Sequence record: OR142618.1
Strand: one strand, 5' to 3'
DNA: 64,000 nucleotides
Both the position numbers and the translations under genes were made by a program. Of this stretch, positions 1 to 21,338 are shown piece by piece; position 1 is the first letter of the stretch, and each line of letters starts with the position of its first letter. The notes below the pieces were generated by a model that worked only from the letters and a program-made list of their open reading frames with translations, had not been told where the DNA came from and searched no databases.

Positions 1-6
1 TTCAAT

Positions 7-49
7 ATCTTTTTCTTTATCTTTTTCTTTATCTTTTTCTTTATCTTTT
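7..49. repeat. 12-bp tandem repeat ATCTTTTTCTTT x3.5
   Basis: Read directly at 7, 19, 31 and partial at 43. Confidence 0.9.
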
Positions 50-520
50 ATCATTGCAAATACAAATAATAATTATTCTTATTTGCATTTAGTGATGTAA
101 ATAATTCTTATTTGTATTTGCGATTAATTCTTATTTGCTACAATAGATAGAATAAGAATAATTCACATTTGCAATGCCGCTAAAAGCGCTGTAAGCGCTG
201 TATATTGCGTAGTAGTGCTAAGCAATGCGTTAGTACAGCTACGCGCACAAACGCTGTTATGCGCGCTTGTAGCGCGTTTTAGGGCCCATGCGCATGCGTA
301 TACCTGTAGCTTTACATAGTAAAATGCAGAAAAGACGTCGTCTATTAACGTGCCTGTCTTAATAGAAATATACAATTGTACAATACCTGCGAAATCCTAC
401 ACACTACAGACATGCAAACAAGCAATGTGCTTGCAAGCATAAAAGTTTTTAAAAAGTAGTAGACACAGTGTAGCATCCCTAGTAAGCTACACACATAAAC
501 AACACAACGGAGTACAAGCT

Positions 521-991
521 ATGTCTAATGTAAGCATCCCTGCTGTAACTGTAGAGAACATCGGCACCCTGCGCATCGTGCGCACCGCTAACAAGGAGGT
601 CGGAAGTGTGCTCGACCTAAAAGTTAACGGGGTAGTAGTAGGGCAAGCTTTCCCGCTCTACAGCACAAAAACCCAGCGTAGCTGGAACGCGAGCATGCAC
701 GCTACCGTTAACGGCGTAGAGGTGCAGTTTGCACAGGAAGGCGTGTTCAGTGCAATCCGCATTGCACGGGCGTTCGAGGATGCAGTAAAGCACGCCGTTA
801 GCAACGGCGAACAAGGGCAACCCCTCCCCGCGCCGGCGGCGGCAGAAGCGCAAGCAGAAGCGCAAGCAGAAGCCCCGGCAGCGCAGACCGAGGATGCGCC
901 GGAGACCCCGGCAGCCGAAGCTAAGCCCGCCCGCAAAGGCGGCAGCAAAGGCGGCAGCAAAGGCGGCAGCAAAGGCGGCAGCAAAAAGTAA
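521..991 (+). CDS. Hypothetical early protein with Ala/Glu/Pro linker and (KGGS)4 basic tail; paralog of 6699..7136
   Basis: GGAG RBS, TAGACA-N17-TAAGCT promoter upstream, terminator after stop; shares TKTQRxW and GVFSAIRIARA with 6699..7136. Confidence 0.9.
   Translation: MSNVSIPAVTVENIGTLRIVRTANKEVGSVLDLKVNGVVVGQAFPLYSTKTQRSWNASMHATVNGVEVQFAQEGVFSAIRIARAFEDAVKHAVSNGEQGQPLPAPAAAEAQAEAQAEAPAAQTEDAPETPAAEAKPARKGGSKGGSKGGSKGGSKK
935..982 (+). repeat. AAAGGCGGCAGC x4 (KGGS repeat) inside CDS
   Basis: Four exact 12-bp copies. Confidence 0.95.
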
Positions 992-1006
992 GCGCTGCTA
1001 ACACAG

Positions 1007-1119
1007 GAAAGGGGCAACTGCCCCTTTCCTTTTATGTCCTAGTTGTAAACGCAAATTAATCTTATTTGCATTTGCACAAGTCATTCTCCGGTTGCATTAC
1101 TGCGGTAAGATGTTAGTAT
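1007..1119 (+). repeat. Terminator + box + sigma70 promoter cassette, copy 1
   Basis: 113 bp, 6 mismatches versus 1884..1996; GGGGC/GCCCC hairpin + T tract, CTTATTTGCA box, TTGCAT-N16-TAGTAT. Confidence 0.9.
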
Positions 1120-1145
1120 ATATGTAGCTATACGGAGTAATTGCT

Positions 1146-1376
1146 ATGAAGCGCAAGTACCTAAAGGCACAGTTCGAGCATGTCAGTGCCGGGCGAGTTG
1201 CAAAAGAACTCGACGAGAAGTTCAATTTCGTTGTAGGCGATAATGTACACTACTGGGCCATCTTCGAAACTAATGTCAAACCCGAAGTTCTACAAAAGGC
1301 AATTCATGACATGAACGGTGGTGCTTACTGCCATGCATATTCTATTCCGTATGAGGATGTAGAGGAGTATCTCTAA
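1146..1376 (+). CDS. Hypothetical protein (76 aa)
   Basis: GGAG RBS, follows cassette promoter. Confidence 0.8.
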   Translation: MKRKYLKAQFEHVSAGRVAKELDEKFNFVVGDNVHYWAIFETNVKPEVLQKAIHDMNGGAYCHAYSIPYEDVEEYL

Positions 1377-1590
1377 TGCTCTACTATCGCGATGTTTATG
1401 CAGGTGTTTGCTGTTAAACTTGTATAGCCGGCACCAGGTCGCATATAACACGCCTAGCCCCATGCAAACTGCGGACATGATCCATTCACGCCTGTAGCGT
1501 ATGTTCGAAGAATTCGGTTGCAAGCCCGACGGTTGCTCTGCTAGCATGTACGAGGATAAGACGCACATTACACTAGCCTGGAGCAAGTAA
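1376..1590 (+). pseudogene. Possible disrupted small gene
   Basis: Slot begins with TAATG overlap and its TAA abuts the next ATG at 1591; a continuous reading needs a frameshift near 1414 and passes TAG at 1495. Confidence 0.3.
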
Positions 1591-1881
1591 ATGGATATGT
1601 CGATTGTGAACAAGCGCTTCGAGAAAGAACTAGCGCTGTTTAATGTCGAAGTTCTCAGTAAGCGCACAGTGAATCATATAACGAAACCGAACATCGAAGT
1701 TTCGTTCAAACTAAAGGGTCATACTACTGAAGAAGAGATGACCACTGTTACTCAGCTCGCACGTCCCATTATGGAGTATGTAAGCGGACGTAGGGTGGTC
1801 TGGGCACATACCGGTCTTTGGCGCTCAATGAAAGACGACCTCGAAGTAGCAGTGCTGACAATGAAGTTATCCAAACAATAA
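1591..1881 (+). CDS. Hypothetical protein (96 aa)
   Basis: GGAG upstream; ends at cassette copy 2 terminator. Confidence 0.8.
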   Translation: MDMSIVNKRFEKELALFNVEVLSKRTVNHITKPNIEVSFKLKGHTTEEEMTTVTQLARPIMEYVSGRRVVWAHTGLWRSMKDDLEVAVLTMKLSKQ

Positions 1882-1883
1882 GA

Positions 1884-1996
1884 GAAAGGGGCACTTGCCC
1901 CTTTCCTTTTATGTCCTAGTTGTAAATGCAAATTACTCTTATTTGCATTTGCACAAGTCAATCTCCTGTTGCATTACTGCGGTAAGATGTTAGTAT
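1884..1996 (+). repeat. Terminator + box + sigma70 promoter cassette, copy 2
   Basis: Near-identical to 1007..1119. Confidence 0.9.
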
Positions 1997-2036
1997 GTGT
2001 TTAGCAGTAACACATAACTAGCAGGAGCAACAGACA

Positions 2037-2297
2037 ATGGCAAAGGTTTACCAAGCAAGTGACAGCACCGGTGAGTGGCAGTGTGTTGTTATCCTCCCCG
2101 ACGTTGACTCGGCTCTTCTGTACGCTACCAAGCGCTGCGCGCAAATGGGCAAGGTGGAAGTTGTCGGTCCGTGGGCTCCTGTAATGCCACAGCATTACGC
2201 GAACATGCCGAAAGGTGACGGTGCGGAAGTGCAGTGGCGCCTCATCCCGCCGGGTTGCGGTGTAGCCTGGTACGTCACTTCGGTTAACGACAAGTAA
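2037..2297 (+). CDS. Hypothetical protein (86 aa)
   Basis: AGGAG RBS after cassette promoter. Confidence 0.8.
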   Translation: MAKVYQASDSTGEWQCVVILPDVDSALLYATKRCAQMGKVEVVGPWAPVMPQHYANMPKGDGAEVQWRLIPPGCGVAWYVTSVNDK

Positions 2298-2307
2298 GGA
2301 GACAGAC

Positions 2308-2610
2308 ATGAACCTCGTTACTCTGTGGATCAACGGGCGTGCTGTGACTGCCCGCAAGGTTGTCAGTAAACACACTGTCCGCAATCCGAACAGTCCGATC
2401 GATATCGAGACTATCGACGTTGTTCGACTGCGTCTGCCCCGTGGTGTTCGTGCTAGCAGTTGGGCACTCCGTAAGGCAGTGTACCAACTCATGGAGCAAA
2501 GCTGTAGCTGCTCGAGAGACTGTTGTGGACACTGGTTCGGCGGCGCACGCAAGATCTACATTAAAGGCAGAGACGTCAGTGTAGTTGCCGGGTACCAGCG
2601 CAATTACTAA
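2308..2610 (+). CDS. Hypothetical protein with CSCSRDCCGHW Cys cluster
   Basis: AAGGAG RBS; terminator right after stop. Confidence 0.8.
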   Translation: MNLVTLWINGRAVTARKVVSKHTVRNPNSPIDIETIDVVRLRLPRGVRASSWALRKAVYQLMEQSCSCSRDCCGHWFGGARKIYIKGRDVSVVAGYQRNY

Positions 2611-2611
2611 A

Positions 2612-2677
2612 GGAAAGGGGGCAACTGCCCCTTTCCTTTTATGTCCTAGTTGTAAATGCAAATTATTCTTATTTGCA
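2612..2677 (+). repeat. Terminator + box cassette, partial copy 3
   Basis: Matches the first ~66 bp of copies 1 and 2, then diverges. Confidence 0.9.
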
Positions 2678-2865
2678 ATGATAATATCCCCGCCACGCAA
2701 ATAAGAACTAATCTTAGAACAAATATTCACTTGATTTTTCTCCCAATATAGTGTATGTGTATACCGGATAAGATTAAGTCTTGTTTGCTTGTTACATTTT
2801 ATATGTTGCAATGCTAAGGCAATGATACTATTATATGTACAGTAATATAACCCAGGGGATATAAC

Positions 2866-3171
2866 ATGTCAGCAGAATTGAAGCGGTTGTTAGAGATTTT
2901 TCCAACCTTTAAATCATTCATTTATGCTGAAGGGGCATATGGCATTGATGTTTGGAAGGCTACGGGTAGTGTTACTTTGGAACAGGTATTCAATGCTGTT
3001 AATGCAGGTAATGCAGAATGGCAATGTAAAGGTGATCCAACATGCAGCCTGGAACAAAACAGCATGTATATTTTCATTACTATTCAGGAACCAGACTACA
3101 CAGGAATGGTTGATATTGATGTTTGTGTAAAGATTACTAACGGTAATGAAGTAAGTTATCAAATAGCATAA
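2866..3171 (+). CDS. Hypothetical protein (101 aa)
   Basis: AGGGG RBS, TTGCAA-N17-TATTAT upstream, terminator after. Confidence 0.8.
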   Translation: MSAELKRLLEIFPTFKSFIYAEGAYGIDVWKATGSVTLEQVFNAVNAGNAEWQCKGDPTCSLEQNSMYIFITIQEPDYTGMVDIDVCVKITNGNEVSYQIA

Positions 3172-3172
3172 T

Positions 3173-3205
3173 AAAGGAAAGGGGGAATTAATCCCCTTTC
3201 CTTTT
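3173..3205. terminator. Bidirectional intrinsic terminator related to the cassette hairpin
   Basis: AAAGGAAAGGGG-GAATTAAT-CCCCTTTCCTTTT. Confidence 0.85.
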
Positions 3206-3390
3206 ATATATAATATACTTATAAATAAGAATTAATTTTATTTAATTAAAATTAGAATAATTCTTATTTGCACGATCCCGCACTTATAACACAAGTATAT
3301 TACAAAAGCAAGAATAAAATTAACTTGACACACATATGTAGAATATAGCACAATGTGTTTATAAATTATATTACTACAGGAGTGTTAACC

Positions 3391-3762
3391 ATGTTCAAAT
3401 GCAAATTGTTTGTAGTAGATCCTGTTTATAACAACCTTTGCTACACTCAACAAATATGGCTCGAAAGTGACATAAATGTGTGTAGTCAAATAAAGCGTAT
3501 TATTTCTGACGCAGAATTGGCATGCGCAAACAGGATAGTAAATAATCCTCATAGTCCGCTGTGCGTTAAATCGGCAGCATTAAAAATGGTTATGGACGGG
3601 CGCATTGACATCGAACTCAAAGATGTCGATAGTTACGTTGATCAATATAAAGACATTCTTCCTAGCACAAATATTTTGGGTGTTTTTAAACCGACGTTTT
3701 TATCTAACTGGAAAGAAGAGTGTGAACTTTATTTCCTCACTTGTGTTGAAAAAGACAATTAA
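3391..3762 (+). CDS. Hypothetical protein
   Basis: AGGAG RBS before ATG 3391 (ORF track starts at 3355). Confidence 0.75.
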   Translation: MFKCKLFVVDPVYNNLCYTQQIWLESDINVCSQIKRIISDAELACANRIVNNPHSPLCVKSAALKMVMDGRIDIELKDVDSYVDQYKDILPSTNILGVFKPTFLSNWKEECELYFLTCVEKDN

Positions 3763-3773
3763 TATAATATAAT

Positions 3774-4061
3774 ATGGAATATGATTTAAAAAATATTGTT
3801 TCGAAGACTATCTTATCTAATAAAATTAAGATAGTCTCTTTACGTACTGTAGTAAAAACTCAGTATAAAAGAGTAGACTTCCATTATAAGATAGAATGTG
3901 AAAATAGTTCTACAAAACGTAATTTGGCACTTGCCCGTATATACAAACCATTAGAACACACATTAGGTTCAAAACTTGTTTATGTAGATGTTGTGCCTAT
4001 CAAGTTTAAGAAAGATGAAATGCCATCTACTATTCTATCGGTAAGTGTAATGACTAGTTGA
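3774..4061 (+). CDS. Hypothetical protein (95 aa)
   Basis: Tiled after previous gene; similar length and beta-alpha-beta pattern to 1591..1881. Confidence 0.7.
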   Translation: MEYDLKNIVSKTILSNKIKIVSLRTVVKTQYKRVDFHYKIECENSSTKRNLALARIYKPLEHTLGSKLVYVDVVPIKFKKDEMPSTILSVSVMTS

Positions 4062-4202
4062 TATTTGGATTTGATAATTGGAAATATAATAGTAATTCTT
4101 ATTTGCAATTATAATAAATTCTTGTTTACTTTTAAAATAAAAGCAAATTCTAGTTGCATAGCTAGAGGCACTGTGCTAGTATATTAAAAAATAAAGACAG
4201 GA

Positions 4203-4394
4203 GTGTTATTCATGCAAACCAAAGCAACCGAGTTGGCAGTAGGCGATGTTGTTTTCTACAATGGCATGAAAATGACTATCCAGAAAATTTCTAAAGGTCG
4301 GTGTGCAATAGATATTACACTAGTAAATACTTTGGCTAAACTCACATCTTATGTGACAGTCGACTACGACGAAGAATTTGAAGAAGTATTATAA
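4203..4394 (+). CDS. Small hypothetical protein, SH3/KOW-like beta pattern (start 4203 or 4212)
   Basis: TTGCAT-N17-TAGTAT promoter, AGGAG RBS; ELAVGDVVFY pattern. Confidence 0.7.
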   Translation: MLFMQTKATELAVGDVVFYNGMKMTIQKISKGRCAIDITLVNTLAKLTSYVTVDYDEEFEEVL

Positions 4395-4411
4395 TGCAGA
4401 AATTATAGTCA

Positions 4412-4440
4412 TAAGAAAAGGGGCATTGCCCCTTTTCTTA
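4412..4440. terminator. Bidirectional terminator between convergent genes
   Basis: TAAGAAAAGGGGC-ATT-GCCCCTTTTCTTA perfect inverted repeat. Confidence 0.9.
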
Positions 4441-4677
4441 TAGTCCCAACAAATGCTTGCCACTTTTGACTTGCATCATACGTACTTTCTTTTTGCGCAT
4501 TTGCGTTCTTACGTTCAGGCTGTTGGGACCTTTGAAGCTATACAGTATTTCAGTAGTCCCGTCTTCATAGTTGCGTACCACATTTGCAACAATTTGACTG
4601 CCTTCCTGGAACGCTTCGATAAACACGCAGTAATTGAAATTTTCCTTGTTAGCGTTATGTGCGCGTAGTTGCATCAT
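4438..4677 (-). CDS. Hypothetical protein (79 aa)
   Basis: AGGAG RBS and TTGCAT..TATACT promoter on the minus strand. Confidence 0.8.
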   Translation of the reverse strand: MMQLRAHNANKENFNYCVFIEAFQEGSQIVANVVRNYEDGTTEILYSFKGPNSLNVRTQMRKKKVRMMQVKSGKHLLGL

Positions 4678-5030
4678 TTTCTGTTACTCCTGCGTTGTTT
4701 TGCTTTGTTATGTGTAGTATACGCTATGTGTGTACTAATGCAAGAATTTTCTTCCATTTTCTTTCAAATAAAATGTTATTAGCATCTATTCTGTTATAAC
4801 ATTTTCTATGACTTCGTGTTTTGCAAATAAGAATTATTCGCATTTGCATTCCTACCTATCTGCCTAAATTTTAGGCAGCCTGGGTGATTGTCTCCCCCGC
4901 CCTATTACTGGTCTCTGTATAAAGATAATAGCATATTTGCATCTGCATGCAAGCATTTTTTGTAGAATTTTCCTCTTGACATTCCTTGCTGTAGGCTACA
5001 TTATGCACACACAAAGCAGGAGATACCATT

Positions 5031-5411
5031 ATGGCACTCATAGCATTAGTCGCAACTGCATATGACAAAGAAGGCGATAAGTTCGACTATGTTCGATATC
5101 TTAAAGCTCATATCAATTTTGTGTCTGCTCAAGATCAACTGAAAGAATGGATCAAAAACAAAATTGATGCAAGTATAGCAGAAGTTAAAATCGGATTACG
5201 TGCAGAAATCGAAGTATTGGCCTATTTGGGAAACTATATAAGCCATAGTCAACGGATTATTAGTCCCGCCGGGATCATCATGTACATTGTTCTTGATGAG
5301 AAGTATGTTAACGAACTTCACGGTCAAATTTCTAATGCAATTGATTGTGAAGAAAAGAAACATGTAATAAAGAAAGAAGAAAACGTCACTTATATTGATT
5401 TTAAAAAATAA
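5031..5411 (+). CDS. Hypothetical protein (126 aa)
   Basis: AGGAG RBS, TTGACA upstream. Confidence 0.8.
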   Translation: MALIALVATAYDKEGDKFDYVRYLKAHINFVSAQDQLKEWIKNKIDASIAEVKIGLRAEIEVLAYLGNYISHSQRIISPAGIIMYIVLDEKYVNELHGQISNAIDCEEKKHVIKKEENVTYIDFKK

Positions 5412-5447
5412 CTTGCGTTAGCTGTAATGTATATGTATTATGTACTC

Positions 5448-5604
5448 AAGTTTGCAGCAAGACGTATTAATTTGTTTTGCTGTTAGTTGTAACTCCTGCT
5501 ACCAAGTATGTGTTGAGCTAATGCTCCTGACTTGGTTCTTGGTACACTGGTTTGGGTGTACCGTTCTTGAGCTGCAAAGGGCTTGCCCGGAGCAGCTTTT
5601 TTTT
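5448..5604 (+). ncRNA. Candidate structured small RNA or attenuator leader
   Basis: TTGCGT-N17-TATTAT (5413-5441); stems 5455-63/5474-82, 5501-07/5530-36, 5515-18/5523-26, 5541-47/5556-62; terminator 5570-75/5592-97 + T tract. Confidence 0.65.
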
Positions 5605-5684
5605 GACCAATATTATTCATTTGACAAAAAATAATAATTAAAAATATAATAGCTTAGTGTATAACTTCCCGTATTAGGCTAATT

Positions 5685-6056
5685 ATGAAATTTGTTATTG
5701 CTGCTATTGCATTGTCTTTGTCCACACTAGTTTCTGCAGAATCTATTTCTGAAGTTAAGATAACTAAAGAAACATGTCTTACACTTCTAGAATTATCTAA
5801 GATTCATGTTGATATGGTAGTAAATGAACACATGAATGCAATACAAATTGCATCTCAAATGGATATTGTATCTAATTCATATAAGAATAATAATAGTAAA
5901 TGGCTTGCATTCTTGCAAGCTCAAGCAAATATTTCAAAATTAATTGATAATGTATATGAGTTTTCATCTACTGAAGAAAGAAAGATTATTCCTCTAGCCA
6001 TATTTAACGGTTGTATGGAAAGAGTTGGTAATACTTTAGAAATATATAAGAAATAA
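5685..6056 (+). CDS. Hypothetical protein with predicted Sec signal peptide
   Basis: MKFVIAAIALSLSTLVSA-ES N-terminus; own TTGACA-N18-TATAAT promoter. Confidence 0.75.
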   Translation: MKFVIAAIALSLSTLVSAESISEVKITKETCLTLLELSKIHVDMVVNEHMNAIQIASQMDIVSNSYKNNNSKWLAFLQAQANISKLIDNVYEFSSTEERKIIPLAIFNGCMERVGNTLEIYKK

Positions 6057-6057
6057 T

Positions 6058-6366
6058 ATGTATAATGTATATGTAGTCCACGGAATAGTCAACACAGGCG
6101 TTGAGACTAATATTTGTGATATAGAACGTTACATTACAAGTAACGACTTCCATGCTGTAGCAAAGTTTCTTAATTTTAAAGAACATATGGTACCAAACAC
6201 ACGATTAATTGTTTCTGGATTAAATACTAAAAAGAACATATTAGAATTAGAATTAAATTTATCGAAAAAAGAATATGTAGTATCAGGTTTTAGAGTTACA
6301 TCACCTGATATAAATGAATGTATTGAATATTACCTGTGTAGAAGGATATTTAAGTTACATGATTGA
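6058..6366 (+). CDS. Hypothetical protein (102 aa)
   Basis: Tiled 1 nt after previous stop. Confidence 0.7.
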   Translation: MYNVYVVHGIVNTGVETNICDIERYITSNDFHAVAKFLNFKEHMVPNTRLIVSGLNTKKNILELELNLSKKEYVVSGFRVTSPDINECIEYYLCRRIFKLHD

Positions 6367-6698
6367 ATTTATATTAAAATCCCTTTTATTAACTTCAGTT
6401 GTCAGTGTTGGCATACTACTGATATTCATTATTATTTCATTATTAATGTTGGGCTTAGGACCGATAGTTCCATTCCTTATTTAATTTTAATTATTTGCAA
6501 GCAAATGCAAATGCGAATAATTCTTATTATCCAGCAGGCTACTGTACCTAATCTTCGTTAGATAAAATCTATTAGAATCTACAAAGTCCATTAAAACGTT
6601 CAATTGTACATGGTGGCCAGATCTGCATATACTACACACATGAAGCAAGCAAACAGCGCTTCATAAACAAACCCAAATACAGCTAGGAGTTCCAAATC

Positions 6699-7136
6699 AT
6701 GACCAAAGCAACCGTTACCGTCGAGCAATCCGCAATCAAACTGGTCCGCCGCAACCTGGAAGGGCACCGGCAGGCCCTGCTGCTGAACGGCGTCGAAGTA
6801 GGCAGCAGCGAAGCGTTCTACAAGACCAAAACCCAGCGCACCTGGTCGGCGAAGATCGACGCCAACATCAACGGCAAGGACATCGTCCTCGAACAGAAAG
6901 GCGTGTTCAGTGCGATCCGGATCGCCCGGGCGATGGAACAAGCAATCCTGTTCATCCTGACCGACGGCAAAGAAGGCGCCGAGATGCCGGCCAGCACGCT
7001 GAGCAAGGAAGAGCAAGCCCACAACCTGGTCAAGGCAGTAGTTCAGGTTGCCGGCCACGCAGTCCAGTCCGGCGACGCTGCCCCGGCGAAGAAAGGCAGC
7101 TCGAAGAAGCGCAAAGAAGCCCAGCCGGAAGCATAA
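6699..7136 (+). CDS. Hypothetical early protein; paralog of 521..991
   Basis: AGGAG RBS, GC-rich codons, shared motifs, basic C-terminal tail. Confidence 0.9.
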   Translation: MTKATVTVEQSAIKLVRRNLEGHRQALLLNGVEVGSSEAFYKTKTQRTWSAKIDANINGKDIVLEQKGVFSAIRIARAMEQAILFILTDGKEGAEMPASTLSKEEQAHNLVKAVVQVAGHAVQSGDAAPAKKGSSKKRKEAQPEA

Positions 7137-7149
7137 TCCGGACTACACC

Positions 7150-7175
7150 GAGAAAGCACCGAAAGGTGCTTTCTC
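7150..7175 (+). terminator. Intrinsic terminator with GAAA loop
   Basis: GAGAAAGCACC-GAAA-GGTGCTTTCTC. Confidence 0.85.
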
Positions 7176-7292
7176 TATGACTGTTAATAACAAATATTCT
7201 TATTTGCATCTATTCTGATATAATAATAACTCTTATTTACAAATCATACTGAATACTGTATTTTACACATTAAACATTGTAGGTAATATAAA

Positions 7293-7781
7293 TTGAATAT
7301 ATTTGTGACTGACACAAATCCTTATGTATGTGCCAAACATCATTGTGATGTTCATCTAAGAAAGATGATAGTAGAAACAGCACAATTGTTAAGCACTACT
7401 CATTATATAATAAACGGATATACTCCTGCATATAAACCTACTCATAAAAATCATCCATGTGCCGTTTGGATTAGAGAAAGTTCAAAAAACTATGAATGGA
7501 CTTATGAACTTCTTACAAGTCTTATAAATGAATTTGAATATAGATTTGACAAACAACATGCAACTAAAATTCACCTTTCGTCATTAAAAACTATACCAAA
7601 ACTCCCTAATATAGAAAGAACAGAGTTTGTCTTAGTTATGCCAGACGAATTTAAAACAGGTAATGTAACACATTCATATCAGTTATATTTAAATGACAAA
7701 TTTAAAGAATGGGCATCGAGATCTAACAGACCCATTTATGCTACATATACAAAGACACCTAAACCATATTTTATTAGTTGA
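7293..7781 (+). CDS. Pyrimidine-dimer DNA glycosylase / endonuclease V superfamily protein
   Basis: MNIFVTDTNP..HCDVHLRKMIVETAQLLST..YKPTHKNHPCAVW motif; TTG start. Confidence 0.75.
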   Translation: MNIFVTDTNPYVCAKHHCDVHLRKMIVETAQLLSTTHYIINGYTPAYKPTHKNHPCAVWIRESSKNYEWTYELLTSLINEFEYRFDKQHATKIHLSSLKTIPKLPNIERTEFVLVMPDEFKTGNVTHSYQLYLNDKFKEWASRSNRPIYATYTKTPKPYFIS

Positions 7782-7853
7782 AATATAATAAAAATGATTG
7801 ACATGTACATAAGATCATATTATGCTGTATAAAACAGCAAGGAGTAGATATAC

Positions 7854-8087
7854 ATGTACCGCAAACTGAATACAAATCCACGCCCAATGCCAAAAACAAA
7901 GGCAATTCCAACTAAATTTGTCATTCAGTACACTGCACGGAATAAAGCAACAGAAAGTTTGTTCAAAAAAAGAACTATTACATTACATGCGTTTGGGCGT
8001 CTCGATGCACAAACACTCCTATCGAAACATATCCGAAAAAATAATTTGGAATTAGGTGTAATTATTGATTTCGGTGAAACAGTTTAG
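7854..8087 (+). CDS. Hypothetical basic protein (77 aa)
   Basis: AAGGAG RBS, TTGACA-N17-TATGCT promoter. Confidence 0.8.
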   Translation: MYRKLNTNPRPMPKTKAIPTKFVIQYTARNKATESLFKKRTITLHAFGRLDAQTLLSKHIRKNNLELGVIIDFGETV

Positions 8088-8098
8088 TTAGTGACACA

Positions 8099-8124
8099 GG
8101 AAAGGGGGCAGTTGCCCCCTTTCC
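8099..8124 (+). terminator. Cassette-family terminator followed by GCAAAT hexamers and a box
   Basis: GGAAAGGGGGCA/TGCCCCCTTTCC stem. Confidence 0.85.
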
Positions 8125-8354
8125 CATTATTAAGTCAAATGCAAATGCAAATACAAATTATTCTTATTTGCACAGATCAGACCATCCATTCCAATAACAT
8201 TACTAACTTGGATGAAATGGCTTACTACAATGAACTTTGAATACTAAAAAGTACCTAAGAAGTAATTCCAGTTGTATCTAAAACACTATGTGTTATTATA
8301 CATATAGTGTTTTTATTTCTTATAACTATATTCAATAATAATGGTAAAACATAT

Positions 8355-8678
8355 ATGATTGAAGTAATTAAATGCATTATATGTAATGAATCACCCCGTC
8401 CTGGTGCATTTGCAGCATTTATTACTCAAATGCGTCAAGTAGTAAAACCTCATGCAACTATAACTAGTTGGAATATTCTGCCCGGCATTAATGATGATCC
8501 AACTAGTTATATTCATGCATTCAGTATAAAATCAAAAACAGCATACAATATTAATCAAGCAGTTACCTTATTACTAATGTCATTATATAATGCTAGTGAA
8601 TATAAGACTAGCTACATACCTACTTCGTTTAAAGACTATGAATCTACAATAAAACATTTATCTAAGATCAAACAATAA
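8355..8678 (+). CDS. Hypothetical protein
   Basis: Likely ATG at 8355 (track start 8307); CxxC near the N-terminus. Confidence 0.65.
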   Translation: MIEVIKCIICNESPRPGAFAAFITQMRQVVKPHATITSWNILPGINDDPTSYIHAFSIKSKTAYNINQAVTLLLMSLYNASEYKTSYIPTSFKDYESTIKHLSKIKQ

Positions 8679-8742
8679 CCAGTTGCATATTTACAAATAT
8701 ACATGTATGCTAAAACATATACACAATCATGAGTACATTATC

Positions 8743-8898
8743 ATGACAAAAGAAATTGCTTTTACTGAAGGATTAAAAGCAGGCACTCAAATAAAAGAAG
8801 GCAAAGCTATCCTAACTGACTTCTTTCGATATTTCAATTCCTTACCAACTAATATGAGAACTTCTTTTATCATCGGTATCAAAACCGGTAGAAACTAA
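8743..8898 (+). CDS. Small hypothetical protein
   Basis: TTGCAT-N17-TATGCT promoter upstream; ATG at 8743. Confidence 0.55.
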   Translation: MTKEIAFTEGLKAGTQIKEGKAILTDFFRYFNSLPTNMRTSFIIGIKTGRN

Positions 8899-8985
8899 TA
8901 AGCATATTAATTTTCATATTTTGGTAGACAAGGGTACTCACTGGATGCATACTGTACACATACAGAACATACGGAGTACAAAGGG

Positions 8986-9255
8986 ATGGATGCGCGTAGC
9001 CTGCTTCGCCTGATAGAAGACCTCCCTATAGCTGTCTTCGGCAGCACAATGGATATTGTTCATCGAGTCAATTTTGAAGCTCTGGACAATGCCGCCCACA
9101 CCGACGGGGTAAAAGTCCACGAAGACGGAACCAACCGTTATACGGACGCTTTTGTTGATTGTTGGCTCCGCAGCGTCGAAACAATTTTGGCCTGTTGCGA
9201 TTTTGTGACCGAGGATGCCGCTAAGTGGTATATCGAGCACGGTGTCAAGTTTTGA
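8986..9255 (+). CDS. Hypothetical protein (89 aa)
   Basis: AAGGGA RBS; natural composition. Confidence 0.7.
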   Translation: MDARSLLRLIEDLPIAVFGSTMDIVHRVNFEALDNAAHTDGVKVHEDGTNRYTDAFVDCWLRSVETILACCDFVTEDAAKWYIEHGVKF

Positions 9256-9353
9256 CATCCTCCGCCTCGCCTGCAGATAAAAAGGTTGACGTAGACTAGC
9301 AATGGACACATAATAATTACAACGCAACGCAACTAGCCCTGGAGGGCAAAACT

Positions 9354-9503
9354 ATGTGTAACATTCAATGCATGAACAGCAAAGCCGGCGAGTCCTACGC
9401 ATGGGTTTGGAGCGATAGCGATAGCGATATCTGCTACGAAGTTATCTTCCGGCATGGCCAAGTCCTCACCCAGGTTTGGCTCGGATATGATATTGTAGCC
9501 TAA
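9354..9503 (+). CDS. Small hypothetical protein (49 aa, not in ORF track)
   Basis: TTGACG-N17-CATAAT (9286-9314), GGAGG RBS, hairpin 9512-9536 after stop. Confidence 0.7.
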   Translation: MCNIQCMNSKAGESYAWVWSDSDSDICYEVIFRHGQVLTQVWLGYDIVA

Positions 9504-9552
9504 CACCAACTAAAGCCCCGTCCCAGGCGGGGCTTTACCGAAGGAAAAGATC

Positions 9553-9762
9553 ATGATCGAACAACTGAAAGACATGCTCGTAGCGCAACGCATGCGCATG
9601 AACCAACTCGAAAAACTGCGCTACACCGGACGCGTCGCTAGCGAGTTGCATGCCCACGCCAGGGAATTGTGTGAAGCATTGGAACTGGCAATTGCAAATG
9701 CCCAGTGCCTGGAAATGCGCAAGTGCGAAGAGGGCACCCTGCACGCCCTCTTCGCACAATAA
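9553..9762 (+). CDS. Hypothetical helical protein (69 aa)
   Basis: AAGGA RBS. Confidence 0.75.
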   Translation: MIEQLKDMLVAQRMRMNQLEKLRYTGRVASELHAHARELCEALELAIANAQCLEMRKCEEGTLHALFAQ

Positions 9763-9795
9763 CCCACCGCGCACAACCCGACAAGGAAACTAACC

Positions 9796-10287
9796 ATGAG
9801 CACTACCATCCCCGATTCGATTCATCCGAGTGATCTTCCTGAAATCGGGCTGCCATTAGCCGACGGAACCTTCTTTGCCCGCCAATGGCTCAATGGCAAG
9901 GAATACGCCTACGTCGATCTCGGCAAAAGCGCCGAGTTCACTGGAGAATGGGGCAAGTATGGCCATGACGTGGTCGGCGCCGGCAGCTACCGAGACGGAG
10001 CTTCGAACACGGTCGCTATGGCAGAAGCTGGCAGTCCGATTGCCAAGCAAGCCATGGAGATCGGAGAAGGCGTATTTATTCCCTCTGTTCTGGAACTGGC
10101 TCTTCTGTTCTCCGCCAAGCAAGCAGGCGAGTTGTCTGGTTTCGCAGATCGCTGGTATTGGTCGAGTTCGCAGGACTCCGCTAACGCCGCCTTCAACATG
10201 GACTTCGGCGACGGCTACACAAGCGGACACGTCAAGTACGTCGACTTCCGTGTCCGCCCCGTCCGCAAGATTCTCATCCTTCAGTAA
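9796..10287 (+). CDS. DUF1566/Lcl C-terminal (C-type-lectin-fold) domain protein
   Basis: GASNT..PSVLEL..WYWSSSQ..AFNMDFGDG..K..FRVRPVR motif set; GC-rich codons; AAGGA RBS. Confidence 0.8.
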   Translation: MSTTIPDSIHPSDLPEIGLPLADGTFFARQWLNGKEYAYVDLGKSAEFTGEWGKYGHDVVGAGSYRDGASNTVAMAEAGSPIAKQAMEIGEGVFIPSVLELALLFSAKQAGELSGFADRWYWSSSQDSANAAFNMDFGDGYTSGHVKYVDFRVRPVRKILILQ

Positions 10288-10425
10288 TATAGCCCCGGCG
10301 AGCAAACATTGCTCGGAAGGTGCTAGCTGAACGACTGACGGAACAATAAATAACGGTTGACGTGCGTCTAGCGGCGGATGCATAATAGCTACAAGACAAC
10401 ACAGCAAGCCCCGGAGGGCGCAACC

Positions 10426-10626
10426 ATGTCCCAGATCGTAGATGTCAAGCAAATTGCAATTGATGCAAACCGTCGCCCGGCCTACAATGCGGTCATGGTG
10501 CGCTGGTTGATGCAGGAAGCTGAACTTCACCGTAGCTGCGGTCGCACCGCTACCCTGTTCTGCATCGTTCGCAACCGCCCCGACGGCACCCAGCGCCAGC
10601 TTGTGCAGCTTGTGGCTAGCGAGTAA
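10426..10626 (+). CDS. Hypothetical protein (66 aa)
   Basis: TTGACG-N18-CATAAT (10357-10386), GGAGG RBS before ATG 10426. Confidence 0.75.
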   Translation: MSQIVDVKQIAIDANRRPAYNAVMVRWLMQEAELHRSCGRTATLFCIVRNRPDGTQRQLVQLVASE

Positions 10627-10656
10627 CCTCTACAACCCTACGCCCAGGAGGCCGTC

Positions 10657-10821
10657 ATGAATGCTGTACTGGCTAAACTTCAAAACGAACGCTGTGCAAC
10701 CCTTCGCTTGATGTTGCTCCCAGAGAACCGCGGGTATCGGTTCACTGACCACCCCTGGGCAAAGCAAATCCGCAATCTGCACGACGAAGCCAAGTGCATC
10801 CGCGAACATTACAGTAAGTAA
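10657..10821 (+). CDS. Small hypothetical protein (54 aa, not in ORF track)
   Basis: AGGAGG RBS, open frame to TAA. Confidence 0.7.
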   Translation: MNAVLAKLQNERCATLRLMLLPENRGYRFTDHPWAKQIRNLHDEAKCIREHYSK

Positions 10822-10855
10822 TCCAATCCCACTGGATCTTACTGAGGATAAGATA

Positions 10856-10945
10856 ATGACCTACGCAGAACTAATAAAGAAATTTCATAACATAGAAGCC
10901 GGTCATTATCTTTCCGACATTGAAGTAATCTTTCAGGAACATTGA
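10856..10945 (+). CDS. Micro-protein (29 aa, not in ORF track)
   Basis: GAGGA RBS; MTYAELIKKF... Confidence 0.45.
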   Translation: MTYAELIKKFHNIEAGHYLSDIEVIFQEH

Positions 10946-11010
10946 GTACAACATTAATGAATTGCTGGGCTTCATCATTTATTGACTAGCCTATGCACAG
11001 GAGAACTAAA

Positions 11011-11307
11011 ATGAATTGCGAACATTTTTTCCTCAGTGCAGTAAAAGAACTTCTGTCCCTGTACCACATTAAGAGTACTATTCAACCGTCTTCTGATAAC
11101 CTCGAAGAATTGGTAGTAGTTATTACCGATACTGCTTTCGGTACTATCAGATATGTCGGTAATAACACCGGATCAGTTATGTGTTATACTATGGGCAGTA
11201 ATTACCCGTTGTATGACACTGAATGTTATTCCGACCGAACTATGATAGATTGTGTTATGTTGATATCAGTTTGGTATTCAATGTTCCCGACATTCGATAA
11301 TAAGTAA
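11011..11307 (+). CDS. Hypothetical protein
   Basis: AGGAG RBS before ATG 11011. Confidence 0.75.
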   Translation: MNCEHFFLSAVKELLSLYHIKSTIQPSSDNLEELVVVITDTAFGTIRYVGNNTGSVMCYTMGSNYPLYDTECYSDRTMIDCVMLISVWYSMFPTFDNK

Positions 11308-11563
11308 TATAATGGTTGCCCTATATAGTGTATGATGTTAGTTGTATACTATATAGAACATTTCTATTAACTGGGAGGGATTAATAAAAATATTTTCTTG
11401 ACAATAGCAGGTATAGGATAATTCTATTATACTGAAAATTGTTATAGAAAAATATAGTTGACAAATTTTGAAAGTGATGAATTCCAACACCGGGTGGCTG
11501 TAAGCTGAGACGGTTGACATTCGGTGAGTGGTGGATTGTTACGCGGGTAGATTTTGAAATTCA

Positions 11564-11790
11564 CCGTCTATAGGTTCACTTATGTCACTTATGAGTCATT
11601 TCCGTATATAGGTTCACTTATAACACATATAAGTTACTTCCATTCGCTCATAAGTAACGTTCGATTATAAGTATCTTTTGCTTATATGTTCACTCATAGG
11701 TTATGATAAATCACATTCAATACTGTTACTACACACATTCAAACCTATAAGTCATTTCACTGTATTGTACTGTACTGTACTGTATCATAT
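11564..11790. repeat. Non-coding repeat tract: 20-bp direct repeat, TTCACT/ATAAGT units and a (TGTAC)n run
   Basis: CCGT(C/A)TATAGGTTCACTTAT at 11564 and 11602; further GTTCACT/ATAAGT copies; TGTAC run near 11766. Confidence 0.7.
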
Positions 11791-11959
11791 ATACTTCATA
11801 CAATTTTCTTCTTTATCATGCTGCTAGTAAACAATCTATGTTATTATGCGTAGAAATGTTGTATAGTGTATTATAGTAAGTATAGTATGATTGCTATACA
11901 ATATTCCTAATCTCATATTGTTGTTTAACTTTCCAAATCTGTCTCGGCTGTTCTACTTT

Positions 11960-12124
11960 ATGTCTCATAGTTACGTATTTTCTTTATCTAGGCGTATACG
12001 TAATAAACAAAGTAACTTTATAAAAAATTACTATAACTCATTAAAATGGGTATACGGTGAAAGAAACATTTATAGATATATTACACGATACTCATTATGT
12101 AGAGCACTATATAGAGGCTATTAA
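11960..12124 (+). CDS. AT-rich micro-protein, array 1
   Basis: ATG at 11960 within track ORF 11891..12124; tiled with the next gene. Confidence 0.5.
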   Translation: MSHSYVFSLSRRIRNKQSNFIKNYYNSLKWVYGERNIYRYITRYSLCRALYRGY

Positions 12125-19592: not shown

Positions 19593-21338
19593 TTAACCTA
19601 CCCTAATCCATACGTATGCACATTGCCACGGAGATTGGTTATTATGTTTTCCGTCGCCGCCGACAGAAGAAGTTAGAGGCGCTGTAGTAACGCTCTGGAA
19701 TCCGTAACCGTCTTCGACCCTAGCAGATTGACCGCCGACTGAACCGAATCTACCCGATTGCGAAACGTTATTTCCGAAACCTTGTATATGCTGATGCGCT
19801 GGCATCTCTGCTACAGTAAGTTTATGGAAATAAGTTCCTCCTGTTGATCCGGCAGCATATCCACCCGAATCTCCATTTGCATCAGTAGTAGATCCGTTCC
19901 CGACTATAGATCTGCCCTGTGCATACGGATTCCAGACCCCGAATCCTAAATAAGTTGCTGGGTTTGCCGAATTAGTTGCGTTAATGTATACAGAACCTAT
20001 AGGATATACTAATTCTCTAGTAGCTGCAATGGCAGTTAAAATTTTCTGATCTACTTGGTCTTGGGTATAAACGGTAGGAAGATTGCCAGTATGCCATATT
20101 CTTTGACCGTTTATATATAGTGCGCCGTCGTTTACGCCATCTGTATGCAGTCGAACATCGTAATCAGTAGAAGAGTTCGTGGCATGGTGAAAATCTAAAT
20201 ACCTAGCTATTTCTGTAACACCAGATGTACTAACAACAGGAATCTTGTTAGCCATATTTCCAGGAACACCAGGTGCTATAACATCGTGTGACGCTGCTGT
20301 GCCTAATCCAACTACAGTTGTGTTCATTGTAACGTTTGTAGTACCGTCTAATACTACTGAACCTAAAACATTTCCAGTTAGTGTTAATGTTCTGCCAAAC
20401 GTCCATTTATCTGCAGAAGCTGCTCTGGTTGCATTAGTCGCACTTGATGCATTACCTACGAAATTTACAGAATACATGTTTCTATAGCGCCGAGCAGTAG
20501 AACCTAAGTCATACGTATTATCTATTACAGGCATCAAATGAGAATTTAAACCTTGATTTGTGCCAGTTCCTAGTGTTAATAACGTCGTATTTACATCTTG
20601 GCCGAAGAATCTTGTTACTCTATATGAAGTACCACCTATAATCCATGTGCCCCTACAGAATAAATCGTTATTAGGTCCGTTTTCTAATGCTATAACAGAA
20701 GAACCATTAGTAAAAGTTATACCACCGGAATTAATCCATGCTTTCTTTGTATATAAATTATCCCATTGTTTTGCAGACGAACCCAAACTAGACGATGTTA
20801 TAAACTGACAAGGATTCGGCATAGTCGATTGGGTTTCGGGTAATATGTCGCCTTGAACTGAAGTATTTCCTACAACTGTAAGAGCAGTTCTGTTAGAACT
20901 AGATGTACATTTTCTTAAAGTTGCTTCTGTTCCGAAAAAGCCCACTGCATAGATATTTTTAAATCTAAGTGTAGGAGACCCTATATTAATTGTATTATCA
21001 ACTTTTGGCAATAGATCTTGTATTAATGCTCCGCCAATAGGAGTCCACATTTCGTTAGATCTATCTGCACTAGTGTTATCGTTAGGAGATAGAGGGTCTG
21101 CTCCTTTCCATACTTTAAGTATTTCCTGCTGAGTATCATACCACAGTTGGCCCTTAATGGCCCCCCGAGGCGGAATTGTATTGGCAAAATTTTCTAAATG
21201 CCTAATTGTACTCTGTGCTATTTCTCCGCCATATGGTGATATGTCTTTGCCTAGTAATGGCAAAGTATAATTCTCTAATATCGTTTGGTCTGCAACAGTA
21301 ATAGGGGTGCCGTTACTTTTGGAAATATTATATGACAT
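19593..21338 (-). CDS. Tail fibre-like protein with gp10/short-fibre-type C-terminal domain
   Basis: Same N-terminal module as 18154..19590; C-terminal YPIGSVY..NPATYLGFGVW..HKLTVAEMPAHQH..HNNQSPW. Confidence 0.75.
   Translation of the reverse strand: MSYNISKSNGTPITVADQTILENYTLPLLGKDISPYGGEIAQSTIRHLENFANTIPPRGAIKGQLWYDTQQEILKVWKGADPLSPNDNTSADRSNEMWTPIGGALIQDLLPKVDNTINIGSPTLRFKNIYAVGFFGTEATLRKCTSSSNRTALTVVGNTSVQGDILPETQSTMPNPCQFITSSSLGSSAKQWDNLYTKKAWINSGGITFTNGSSVIALENGPNNDLFCRGTWIIGGTSYRVTRFFGQDVNTTLLTLGTGTNQGLNSHLMPVIDNTYDLGSTARRYRNMYSVNFVGNASSATNATRAASADKWTFGRTLTLTGNVLGSVVLDGTTNVTMNTTVVGLGTAASHDVIAPGVPGNMANKIPVVSTSGVTEIARYLDFHHATNSSTDYDVRLHTDGVNDGALYINGQRIWHTGNLPTVYTQDQVDQKILTAIAATRELVYPIGSVYINATNSANPATYLGFGVWNPYAQGRSIVGNGSTTDANGDSGGYAAGSTGGTYFHKLTVAEMPAHQHIQGFGNNVSQSGRFGSVGGQSARVEDGYGFQSVTTAPLTSSVGGDGKHNNQSPWQCAYVWIRVG

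Follow-up and report, generated by a model that had tools for sequence, protein, structure and literature searches.

Putative operators of the Fur-family sequence class bound the early gene cassettes of the PA5oct-like jumbo phage Callisto

Introduction

The 64-kb stretch of DNA analyzed here (the window) is the 3' end of record OR142618.1, the genome of Callisto, a PA5oct-like jumbo phage of Pseudomonas, and its first 8.2 kb carry a short motif that recurs in the gaps between small early genes and resembles the boxes bound by Fur, the iron repressor of the bacterial host. Window positions 1-9000 are 100% identical to Callisto 222855-231854 and 95-98% identical to ten further Wroclawvirus records, including those of PA5oct and of Paride, a relative that is under study for therapy and for its killing of dormant cells. 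The PA5oct counterpart of this segment (27.4-36.3 kb) lies within a 39,080-bp direct terminal repeat, and the motif-bearing DNA at 55-8172 is part of the early-transcribed long terminal repeat. In PA5oct, the terminal-repeat genes gp34-gp105 are early and strongly transcribed 5 min post infection, nearly all early transcripts come from a single strand, and the phage depends on host RNA polymerase, as its block by rifampicin shows (PMC7318152). The regulatory elements named in that study and its preprint are -35/-10 motifs and terminators only (PMC7318152), and a literature search with the motif string returned only primers and unrelated matches; the element described below is mentioned neither in the PA5oct study or preprint nor in the literature recovered by these searches. 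We present the sites as what their sequence indicates them to be, namely extended, asymmetric operators of the Fur-family class that double as cassette boundaries, and weigh host Fur against other candidate partners.

Results

Organization of the early region

The early region consists of cassettes with the order terminator, motif site, sigma-70 promoter and small gene, in which the site forms the upstream edge; the GC content of these cassettes spans 0.28 to 0.60. The original prediction, made from the letters of the window alone, had placed the sites after terminators, and six of them indeed begin 6-22 nt past an intrinsic terminator stem. The first four sites (61-87, 90-116, 113-139 and 147-173, plus strand; cores at 75, 104, 127 and 161) form a cluster at 61-173, 348 nt upstream of a gene at 521-991 (paralog B, see below). 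Between the two lies a GC-rich leader of about 350 nt (174-520) with no plausible plus-strand open reading frame; a similar long leader precedes a homolog of this gene in the metagenomic contig L071 and occurs at Callisto 204341-204720, with no Rfam match. An Rfam scan of window 1-12000 as a whole likewise gave no match. T/C-rich tandem repeats stand directly before the two largest site clusters, at window 6-49 (TATCTTTTTCTT x3.7) and, as similar ttcatttctttattcatctc units, upstream of a triple palindrome outside the window (L003:24120-24215).

Further along, a terminator-site-promoter unit of about 110 bp is present in three copies (1005-1119, 1884-1998 and 2615-2677 onward). The first contains a plus-strand site with a tandem ATTTGCA (1044-1076; core 1058-1070) and a -35 element, TTGCAT, 21 nt downstream; the second contains the plus-strand site at 1921-1953 (core 1935-1947); and the third contains an exact-core site at 2651-2677 (plus strand; core 2665-2677), which coincides with a synteny junction to all five relatives compared. 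It is followed by a weaker site in the opposite orientation (2696-2722, minus strand; core 2696-2708 with two mismatches), and then by two abutting sites at 3220-3272, of which 3220-3246 is on the minus strand and 3246-3272 on the plus strand, with an exact core at 3260. The exact-core site at 4081-4107 (plus strand; core 4095-4107) lies upstream of the promoter of the gene at 4212-4394, and the gap between the divergent genes 4438-4677 (minus strand) and 5031-5411 (plus strand) holds a full palindrome, TGCAAATAAGAAT-T-ATTCGCATTTGCA, at 4822-4848. A near-palindrome at 6506-6532, with an array of GCAAAT hexamers on its left (6494-6532 in all), is situated 169 nt upstream of the gene at 6699-7136 (paralog C). 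Two tandem plus-strand sites at 7182-7241 (7182-7208, with an exact core, and 7215-7241) begin 6 nt past a terminator at about 7151-7176. The last element, at 8135-8172 on the plus strand, consists of four hexamers that merge into an exact-core site (8146-8172), with an insertion/deletion (indel) junction of the phages Cassandra and MIJ3 11 nt downstream. Two near-palindromes had been pointed out earlier: the one at 4825-4845 is present as given, and the one placed at 6509-29 is also present, with its coordinates shifted by one base to 6508-6528.

The motif is concentrated in the terminal repeat

With up to two mismatches allowed, the 13-mer ATTCTTATTTGCA has 24 matches in the window, as against 5.95 +/- 2.35 in dinucleotide shuffles, none of 100 of which reached 24. 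Twenty-one of these matches, eight of them exact, fall within 55-8172. One (at 5876, two mismatches) lies inside a coding sequence and is probably due to chance, and collapsing the matches of the early region leaves 16 distinct 27-bp sites, in agreement with the original count of about 16. The proposed confinement to the first 8.2 kb is also borne out within the window, in which the three remaining matches (27602, 42049 and 53259) each have two mismatches and are at chance level.

The array is not, for all that, limited to the window. The whole 287-kb Callisto genome has 65 matches at the same threshold, with 37 of them in the interval 200-231 kb and the rest scattered at a chance level of 0-4 per 10 kb with no second concentration. 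Upstream of the window the array reaches Callisto 204.2 kb, an extension that, like the dyad described below, goes beyond the original prediction. At 204221-204340 there are three full palindromes in tandem, followed by single sites at 206058, 209056, 210486, 214645, 216525 and 217954. At least nine sites just upstream of the window and 16 inside it give about 25 altogether, dispersed over about 27 kb, and this span corresponds to the early block described for PA5oct. Two abundant early RNAs of PA5oct, ncRNA001 and ncRNA002 (L070:5968-6203 and 19656-20106), both end at terminators with motif sites directly behind them, namely the triple palindrome in one case and the counterpart of the Callisto 217954 site in the other. 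Scanning IMG/VR with a 17-mer of the site gave 59 contigs with one match each, a chance level that included no relatives. A metagenome scan for paired cores 9-39 nt apart gave 93 loci, mostly unrelated tandem repeats, towards which the search pattern is biased, and none of these 93 loci encodes the paralog family discussed below.

Anatomy of the sites and their placement relative to promoters

Alignment of the sites gives TGCAAATAAGAAT-T-ATTCTTATTTGCA as their consensus, an imperfect palindrome of 27 bp. Only the right half served as the seed for selecting sites, and even so the left half has a consensus that is the exact reverse complement of the right one. This makes the unit a 13-1-13 dyad whose halves differ, one being strong and the other degenerate; the recurring core noticed originally is one half of it. 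The sites that are fully two-sided are 4822-4848 in the divergent gap, 6506-6532 and those of the triple cluster. The inner 7-1-7 element of the dyad reads TAAGAAT-T-ATTCTTA, and a second Fur-type heptamer, TGCAAAT, lies 6 bp further out. Additional hexamers in a 6-bp register often follow the sites: the register previously reported at 8135-8158 is there and reads TCAAAT GCAAAT GCAAAT ACAAAT, and the same offset of 6 relates hexamers or heptamers at 6494-6518, in the tandem ATTTGCA at 1064-1076, and between the inner and outer heptamers themselves.

The distance from the end of a site to the next -35 element, as predicted, ranges from 15 to about 180 nt. Two features of this spacing evoke a partner other than Fur, either another host factor, be it some other regulator or a nucleoid protein, or RNA polymerase itself, for which the site would act as an upstream element or as a -35-like decoy of the form TTGCAN. 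First, the end of the core is 15-21 nt away from the downstream -35 in nine cassettes, within the zone of the polymerase alpha-subunit, and the site ends in TTGCA, the same sequence as the -35 of the phage early promoters. Second, a -10-like hexamer lies 10-12 nt past the core at Callisto 204328, 210486, 214645 and 216525 and at window 3260 and 7196; at exactly 12 nt downstream it occurs in five of 21 sites against 0.65 expected, an excess that is marginal after allowing for the 60 offsets scanned. However, the distance to the promoter is too variable for such a role to fit well, and reading the site itself as a promoter was rejected as 11-12 nt to a -10-like hexamer is too short for sigma-70. 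Nor did a search of Callisto 195-235 kb find any DnaA-box cluster, and the site is not known to match the consensus sequences of Fis, IHF, DnaA, TyrR or GacA. We thus regard this class of partner as decidedly improbable. The spacing between core and -10-like hexamer resembles the box-to-minus-10 spacing of the activator-dependent middle promoters of T4.

The core is conserved and sites coincide with cassette junctions

In an alignment of six phages (window 3260-8183), two of 91 core columns are variable, as against eight of 84 in the left half and 87 of 1325 in other intergenic DNA, which suggests that constraint is confined to the core. Stronger evidence of conservation is the retention of the core in divergent relatives, which we located via a protein and not via the motif. 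The metagenomic contigs L071, L072, L073 and L074/75 (45-51% GC) have the exact core at cassette boundaries, with TGCGAAT as the left half. More distant contigs have altered versions: L076 has three copies of TGCAAAC-A-ATTTGC at 270-420, resembling an operator crystallized with a Fur protein, and in L077 a perfect 12-1-12 palindrome, AAATGAGATGAG-T-CTCATCTCATTT, stands at 3032-3056 in place of the motif. The element is real, highly significant and conserved.

Comparison of Callisto with PA5oct, Paride, Ettore, Cassandra and MIJ3 revealed four indel junctions in window 1-8200, and all four are at or beside a site. The junction 1119/1884 lies inside the 110-bp repeats; that at 2662-2677 is on a core, where the alignment blocks overlap, meaning that the extra DNA there is flanked by two copies; that at 3184/3260 is at a core edge, with an extra gene cassette in Paride, Cassandra and MIJ3 that ends exactly at 3260; and that at 8183/8217 is 11 nt past a core. 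The significance of this coincidence is modest, with a rough chance estimate of P 0.1-0.2, given that junctions restricted to intergenic DNA would by chance often be close to a site. That the sites double as junctions for the gain and loss of cassettes would follow from their being repeated.

These junctions also bear on the idea that the repeat lacks a dedicated protein partner and is a composite terminator-promoter module, akin to the early-promoter stem-loop elements (PeSLs) of T4-like phages (PMC2839356, PMC4122927), kept as recombination between its copies shuffles cassettes. PeSLs, too, combine a stem-loop with a sigma-70 early promoter on the flanks of small variable genes whose function is unknown, and indel junctions between close relatives fall at them (PMC4122927) as they do in the Callisto group. 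Moreover, stems of the form AAAGGGG-loop-CCCCTTT and the TTGCAT-type -35 resemble published PeSLs (PMC4122927), and the wide range of GC content among the cassettes is as expected of such shuffling. However, PeSLs belong to a different phage group and have no palindromic operator described between stem-loop and promoter. Homologous recombination needs neither a dyad nor an exact 13-mer, and here the core persists across 33-51% GC between flanks that are otherwise unrelated. Accordingly, together with the chance estimate given above, we consider it quite unlikely that the repeat is only a module of this kind. As a separate matter, a segment of about 300 bp at Callisto 211531-211839 (L003:31531-31839) is 89-94% identical in dozens of unrelated P. 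aeruginosa phages, including BR153a, PAO1_Ab17 and CF23a, which suggests that phage groups have exchanged early-region DNA.

Relationship to Fur boxes

The likeness of the sites to Fur boxes, proposed in the original prediction, is real, and the interpretation built on it there is partly supported. Fur boxes are described by a 19-bp consensus, GATAATGATAATCATTATC, or as 7-1-7 elements or hexamer arrays, and the phage dyad shares with them the single central base, the GAAT-n-ATTC core, hexamers in a 6-bp register and multicopy sites; offsets of 3 or 6 bases are typical of clustered Fur sites (PMC2189734). The outer heptamer of the phage, TGCAAAT, is the half-site of an operator crystallized with a Fur protein, TGCAAAT-n-ATTTGCA (PMC4506495).

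A further parallel emerged from a scan of 185,579 bacterial genomes with AAATRAGAATNATTCTYATTT, which gave at least 120 loci, many in high-GC beta- and gamma-proteobacteria. Among the matches listed, 45 have G on both halves, 48 are mixed and 27 have A in each half, as in the phage consensus. The inner 21-mer, AAATAAGAAT-n-ATTCTTATTT, is thus found verbatim in at least 27 bacterial loci, an identity that concerns the consensus and not every phage site. Of 20 A-type loci checked among these matches, 12 adjoin Fur-family or iron-related genes and eight adjoin unrelated or unassigned ones; the neighbors in the 12 are a Fur-family regulator (six), FeoB (two) and, once each, a TonB-dependent receptor, an iron-type binding protein, a catalase and a flavodiiron/rubredoxin protein. 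Mixed-type sites among the matches listed adjoin FecR and a ZnuA-like gene. The occurrence of the 21-mer beside Fur-family and iron genes implies that the phage consensus is a natural Fur-family operator sequence. The scan also bears on the supposedly essential G of the half-site: A replaces it in 102 of 240 natural half-sites among the matches listed and is thus common in natural boxes.

These observations make binding of host Fur to the sites our leading reading, which we hold as tentative in view of several points that weigh against it. First, the match to the canonical consensus is limited: by the rule that a Fur box has at least 14 of 19 bases in common with GATAATGATAATCATTATC (PMC6922518), two of 22 sites qualify (61-87 and 6506-6532) and the others score 10-13, in an AT-rich genome in which 32 positions attain 14/19; against the canonical 7-1-7 element the sites match 8-11 of 14 bases. 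Second, crystal structures of Fur with DNA show Arg57 in contact with a guanine at position 2 of the heptamer, where the dominant inner TAAGAAT has A; the outer TGCAAAT and the TGCGAAT variants do have this guanine. Third, GCA after ATTT is near-invariant in the phage but occurs in ten of 240 natural half-sites among the matches listed; the triplet may supply the G of a further heptamer 6 bp away, or it may be the signature of a different protein. Fourth, the promoter-proximal half is much better conserved than the distal one, and the strong half of stand-alone sites runs along transcription in 16 cases and opposes it in one, whereas a symmetric dimer predicts neither this asymmetry nor the orientation bias. 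Fifth, the sites overlap no predicted -35 or -10 element, in contrast to E. coli, where 83% of Fur clusters overlap a promoter (PMC2189734). Sixth, the altered motifs in the distant contigs fit a co-evolving phage protein better. Finally, the paper on the transcriptome of PA5oct infection makes no mention of iron or siderophore genes in its main text. The setting, a virulent jumbo phage, is itself unlike that of known Fur boxes.

A paralog family as candidate phage-encoded binder

The alternative already raised in the original prediction, namely that a sequence-specific protein encoded by the phage uses the sites as its operators, is a serious and close rival to host Fur, even though we judge it somewhat unlikely in its own right. 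Such a protein, possibly delivered with the virion, would coordinate the early cassettes by shut-off, activation or counter-silencing, and its specificity would merely overlap that of Fur. The un-Fur-like features of the sites, namely the near-invariant GCA, the asymmetry of the halves and the orientation bias, would find a ready place here. A candidate is a family of three paralogs encoded at window 521-991 (B), window 6699-7136 (C) and Callisto 204721-205425 (L003:24721-25425), each of which directly follows one of the three strongest site clusters. The same arrangement of sites upstream of a homolog recurs in the divergent contigs L071, L072, L073 and L074/75, and in L076 and L077 the motif shifts in step with the divergence of the protein. 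Each paralog has a conserved N-terminal domain of about 90 residues and a basic or charged low-complexity C-terminal tail, which dominated the matches in a word-indexed homology search of paralog B. The PA5oct counterpart of the gene at Callisto 204721-205425 is recorded as a 'structural protein' found by mass spectrometry.

Against a role of this family in binding the sites, the N-terminal domain, for which a five-stranded sheet with one helix is predicted (confidence about 90 over residues 10-100), gave no significant solved-structure match in a fold search (best E 0.03, TM 0.24), and a profile search against solved structures likewise gave none. Giant proteins of up to 3636 residues contain the same domain in 6-16 repeats, and some genes of the family, namely that of L174 and a second copy in L071 (1122-1430), have no upstream sites. 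A Pfam search of 40 terminal-repeat proteins recovered no DNA-binding family, the sole hit being a weak one to Pyr_excise in the product of gene 7293-7781, and a PHROGs search of ten proteins, including the three paralogs, gave no match for the paralogs. Gene 7293-7781, just downstream of two sites, matches phrog_624, 'DNA binding protein' (E 7e-52), and is the only early gene with a family match. In favor of host Fur, searches of Callisto for Fur-family homologs and for homologs of T5 A1, A2 and p007 found none. In addition, an unrelated operator is unlikely to match a 21-bp Fur-family box by chance. The link between the paralog family and the sites is suggestive, not established.

Near-canonical Fur-box arrays in the terminal repeats of T5-like phages

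A short-query BLAST search with the palindrome at 4822-4848 returned matches in many T5-like phages, and all three that we fetched are in noncoding DNA of the terminal-repeat (pre-early) region: L178:5538-6058 (Escherichia phage AKFV33, about 8.66-9.18 kb), L177:190-330 (Salmonella phage polluks) and L176:5600-6060 (Vibrio phage PG07). The PG07 palindrome equals window 4823-4848 at 25 of 26 bases. In their untranslated end, these terminal repeats have arrays of palindromes of the type AAATGAGAAT-n-ATTCTCATTT beside DnaA boxes, matching the Fur 7-1-7 element at 12-14 of 14 bases, and AKFV33 has eight positions within about 500 bp that attain at least 14/19 to the Fur consensus; TGAGAATGATTCTCA and TGATAATGATTCTCA exemplify such near-canonical boxes, which we count in favor of the Fur reading. 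The region is that of PalD-PalJ in Repeat Region 3, near the injection-stop signal, palindromes of unknown function for which roles as cleavage or injection-stop elements have been proposed (Davison 2020, bioRxiv 10.1101/866236); the paper makes no mention of Fur.

Both in Callisto and in T5-like phages, the elements are in a long direct terminal repeat, the DNA that is expressed first, with near-identical half-sites (AAATGAGAAT in T5-like phages and AAATAAGAAT in Callisto) and shared TGCGAAT variants. The T5-like sites, however, form one cluster in the untranslated end beside paired DnaA boxes and fit the canonical Fur box far better, whereas those of Callisto are spread between cassettes with no DnaA-box cluster.

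Discussion

The sequences show the motif and its dyad, how the sites are distributed, the identity of the consensus to natural Fur-family operators and the junctions; Fur binding and every functional consequence of it are inferred. If host Fur is the partner, iron-loaded dimers would bind the sites, perhaps several per site at offsets of 6 bp. Classical repression by occlusion is unlikely because the sites stand 15-180 bp upstream of the -35 elements. Instead, bound Fur might modulate the early promoters according to the iron status of the host, it might insulate or counter-silence the AT-rich early DNA, and it might be progressively titrated as phage genomes replicate. Host iron repressors are known to act on phage DNA at the iron-regulated toxin promoters of prophages, such as stx1 with Fur and tox with DtxR, but these involve single operators over one promoter in temperate phages rather than an array in a lytic early region.

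A broader proposal, which we consider doubtful, is that Fur-box arrays are a shared, hitherto unrecognized feature of the terminal repeats of T5-like and PA5oct-like virulent phages, with repeat-bound host Fur serving as a checkpoint or handle at the earliest stage of infection. In T5, the terminal-repeat DNA, with the PalE-J region beside the injection-stop signal, enters first, and Fur bound to it could hold or organize the incoming end, set early transcription by iron, or itself be titrated so that host iron metabolism is reprogrammed. Were the Fur reading true, the palindromes next to the T5 injection-stop region, which have long lacked an explanation, would gain a concrete identity.

For the PA5oct-like phages themselves, an operator common to every early cassette would be the first candidate control element, and the junctions at its copies show how early genes are swapped. 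If host Fur does bind it, then a virulent jumbo phage would couple its first wave of transcription to the iron state of its host, or drain the host of its iron repressor.

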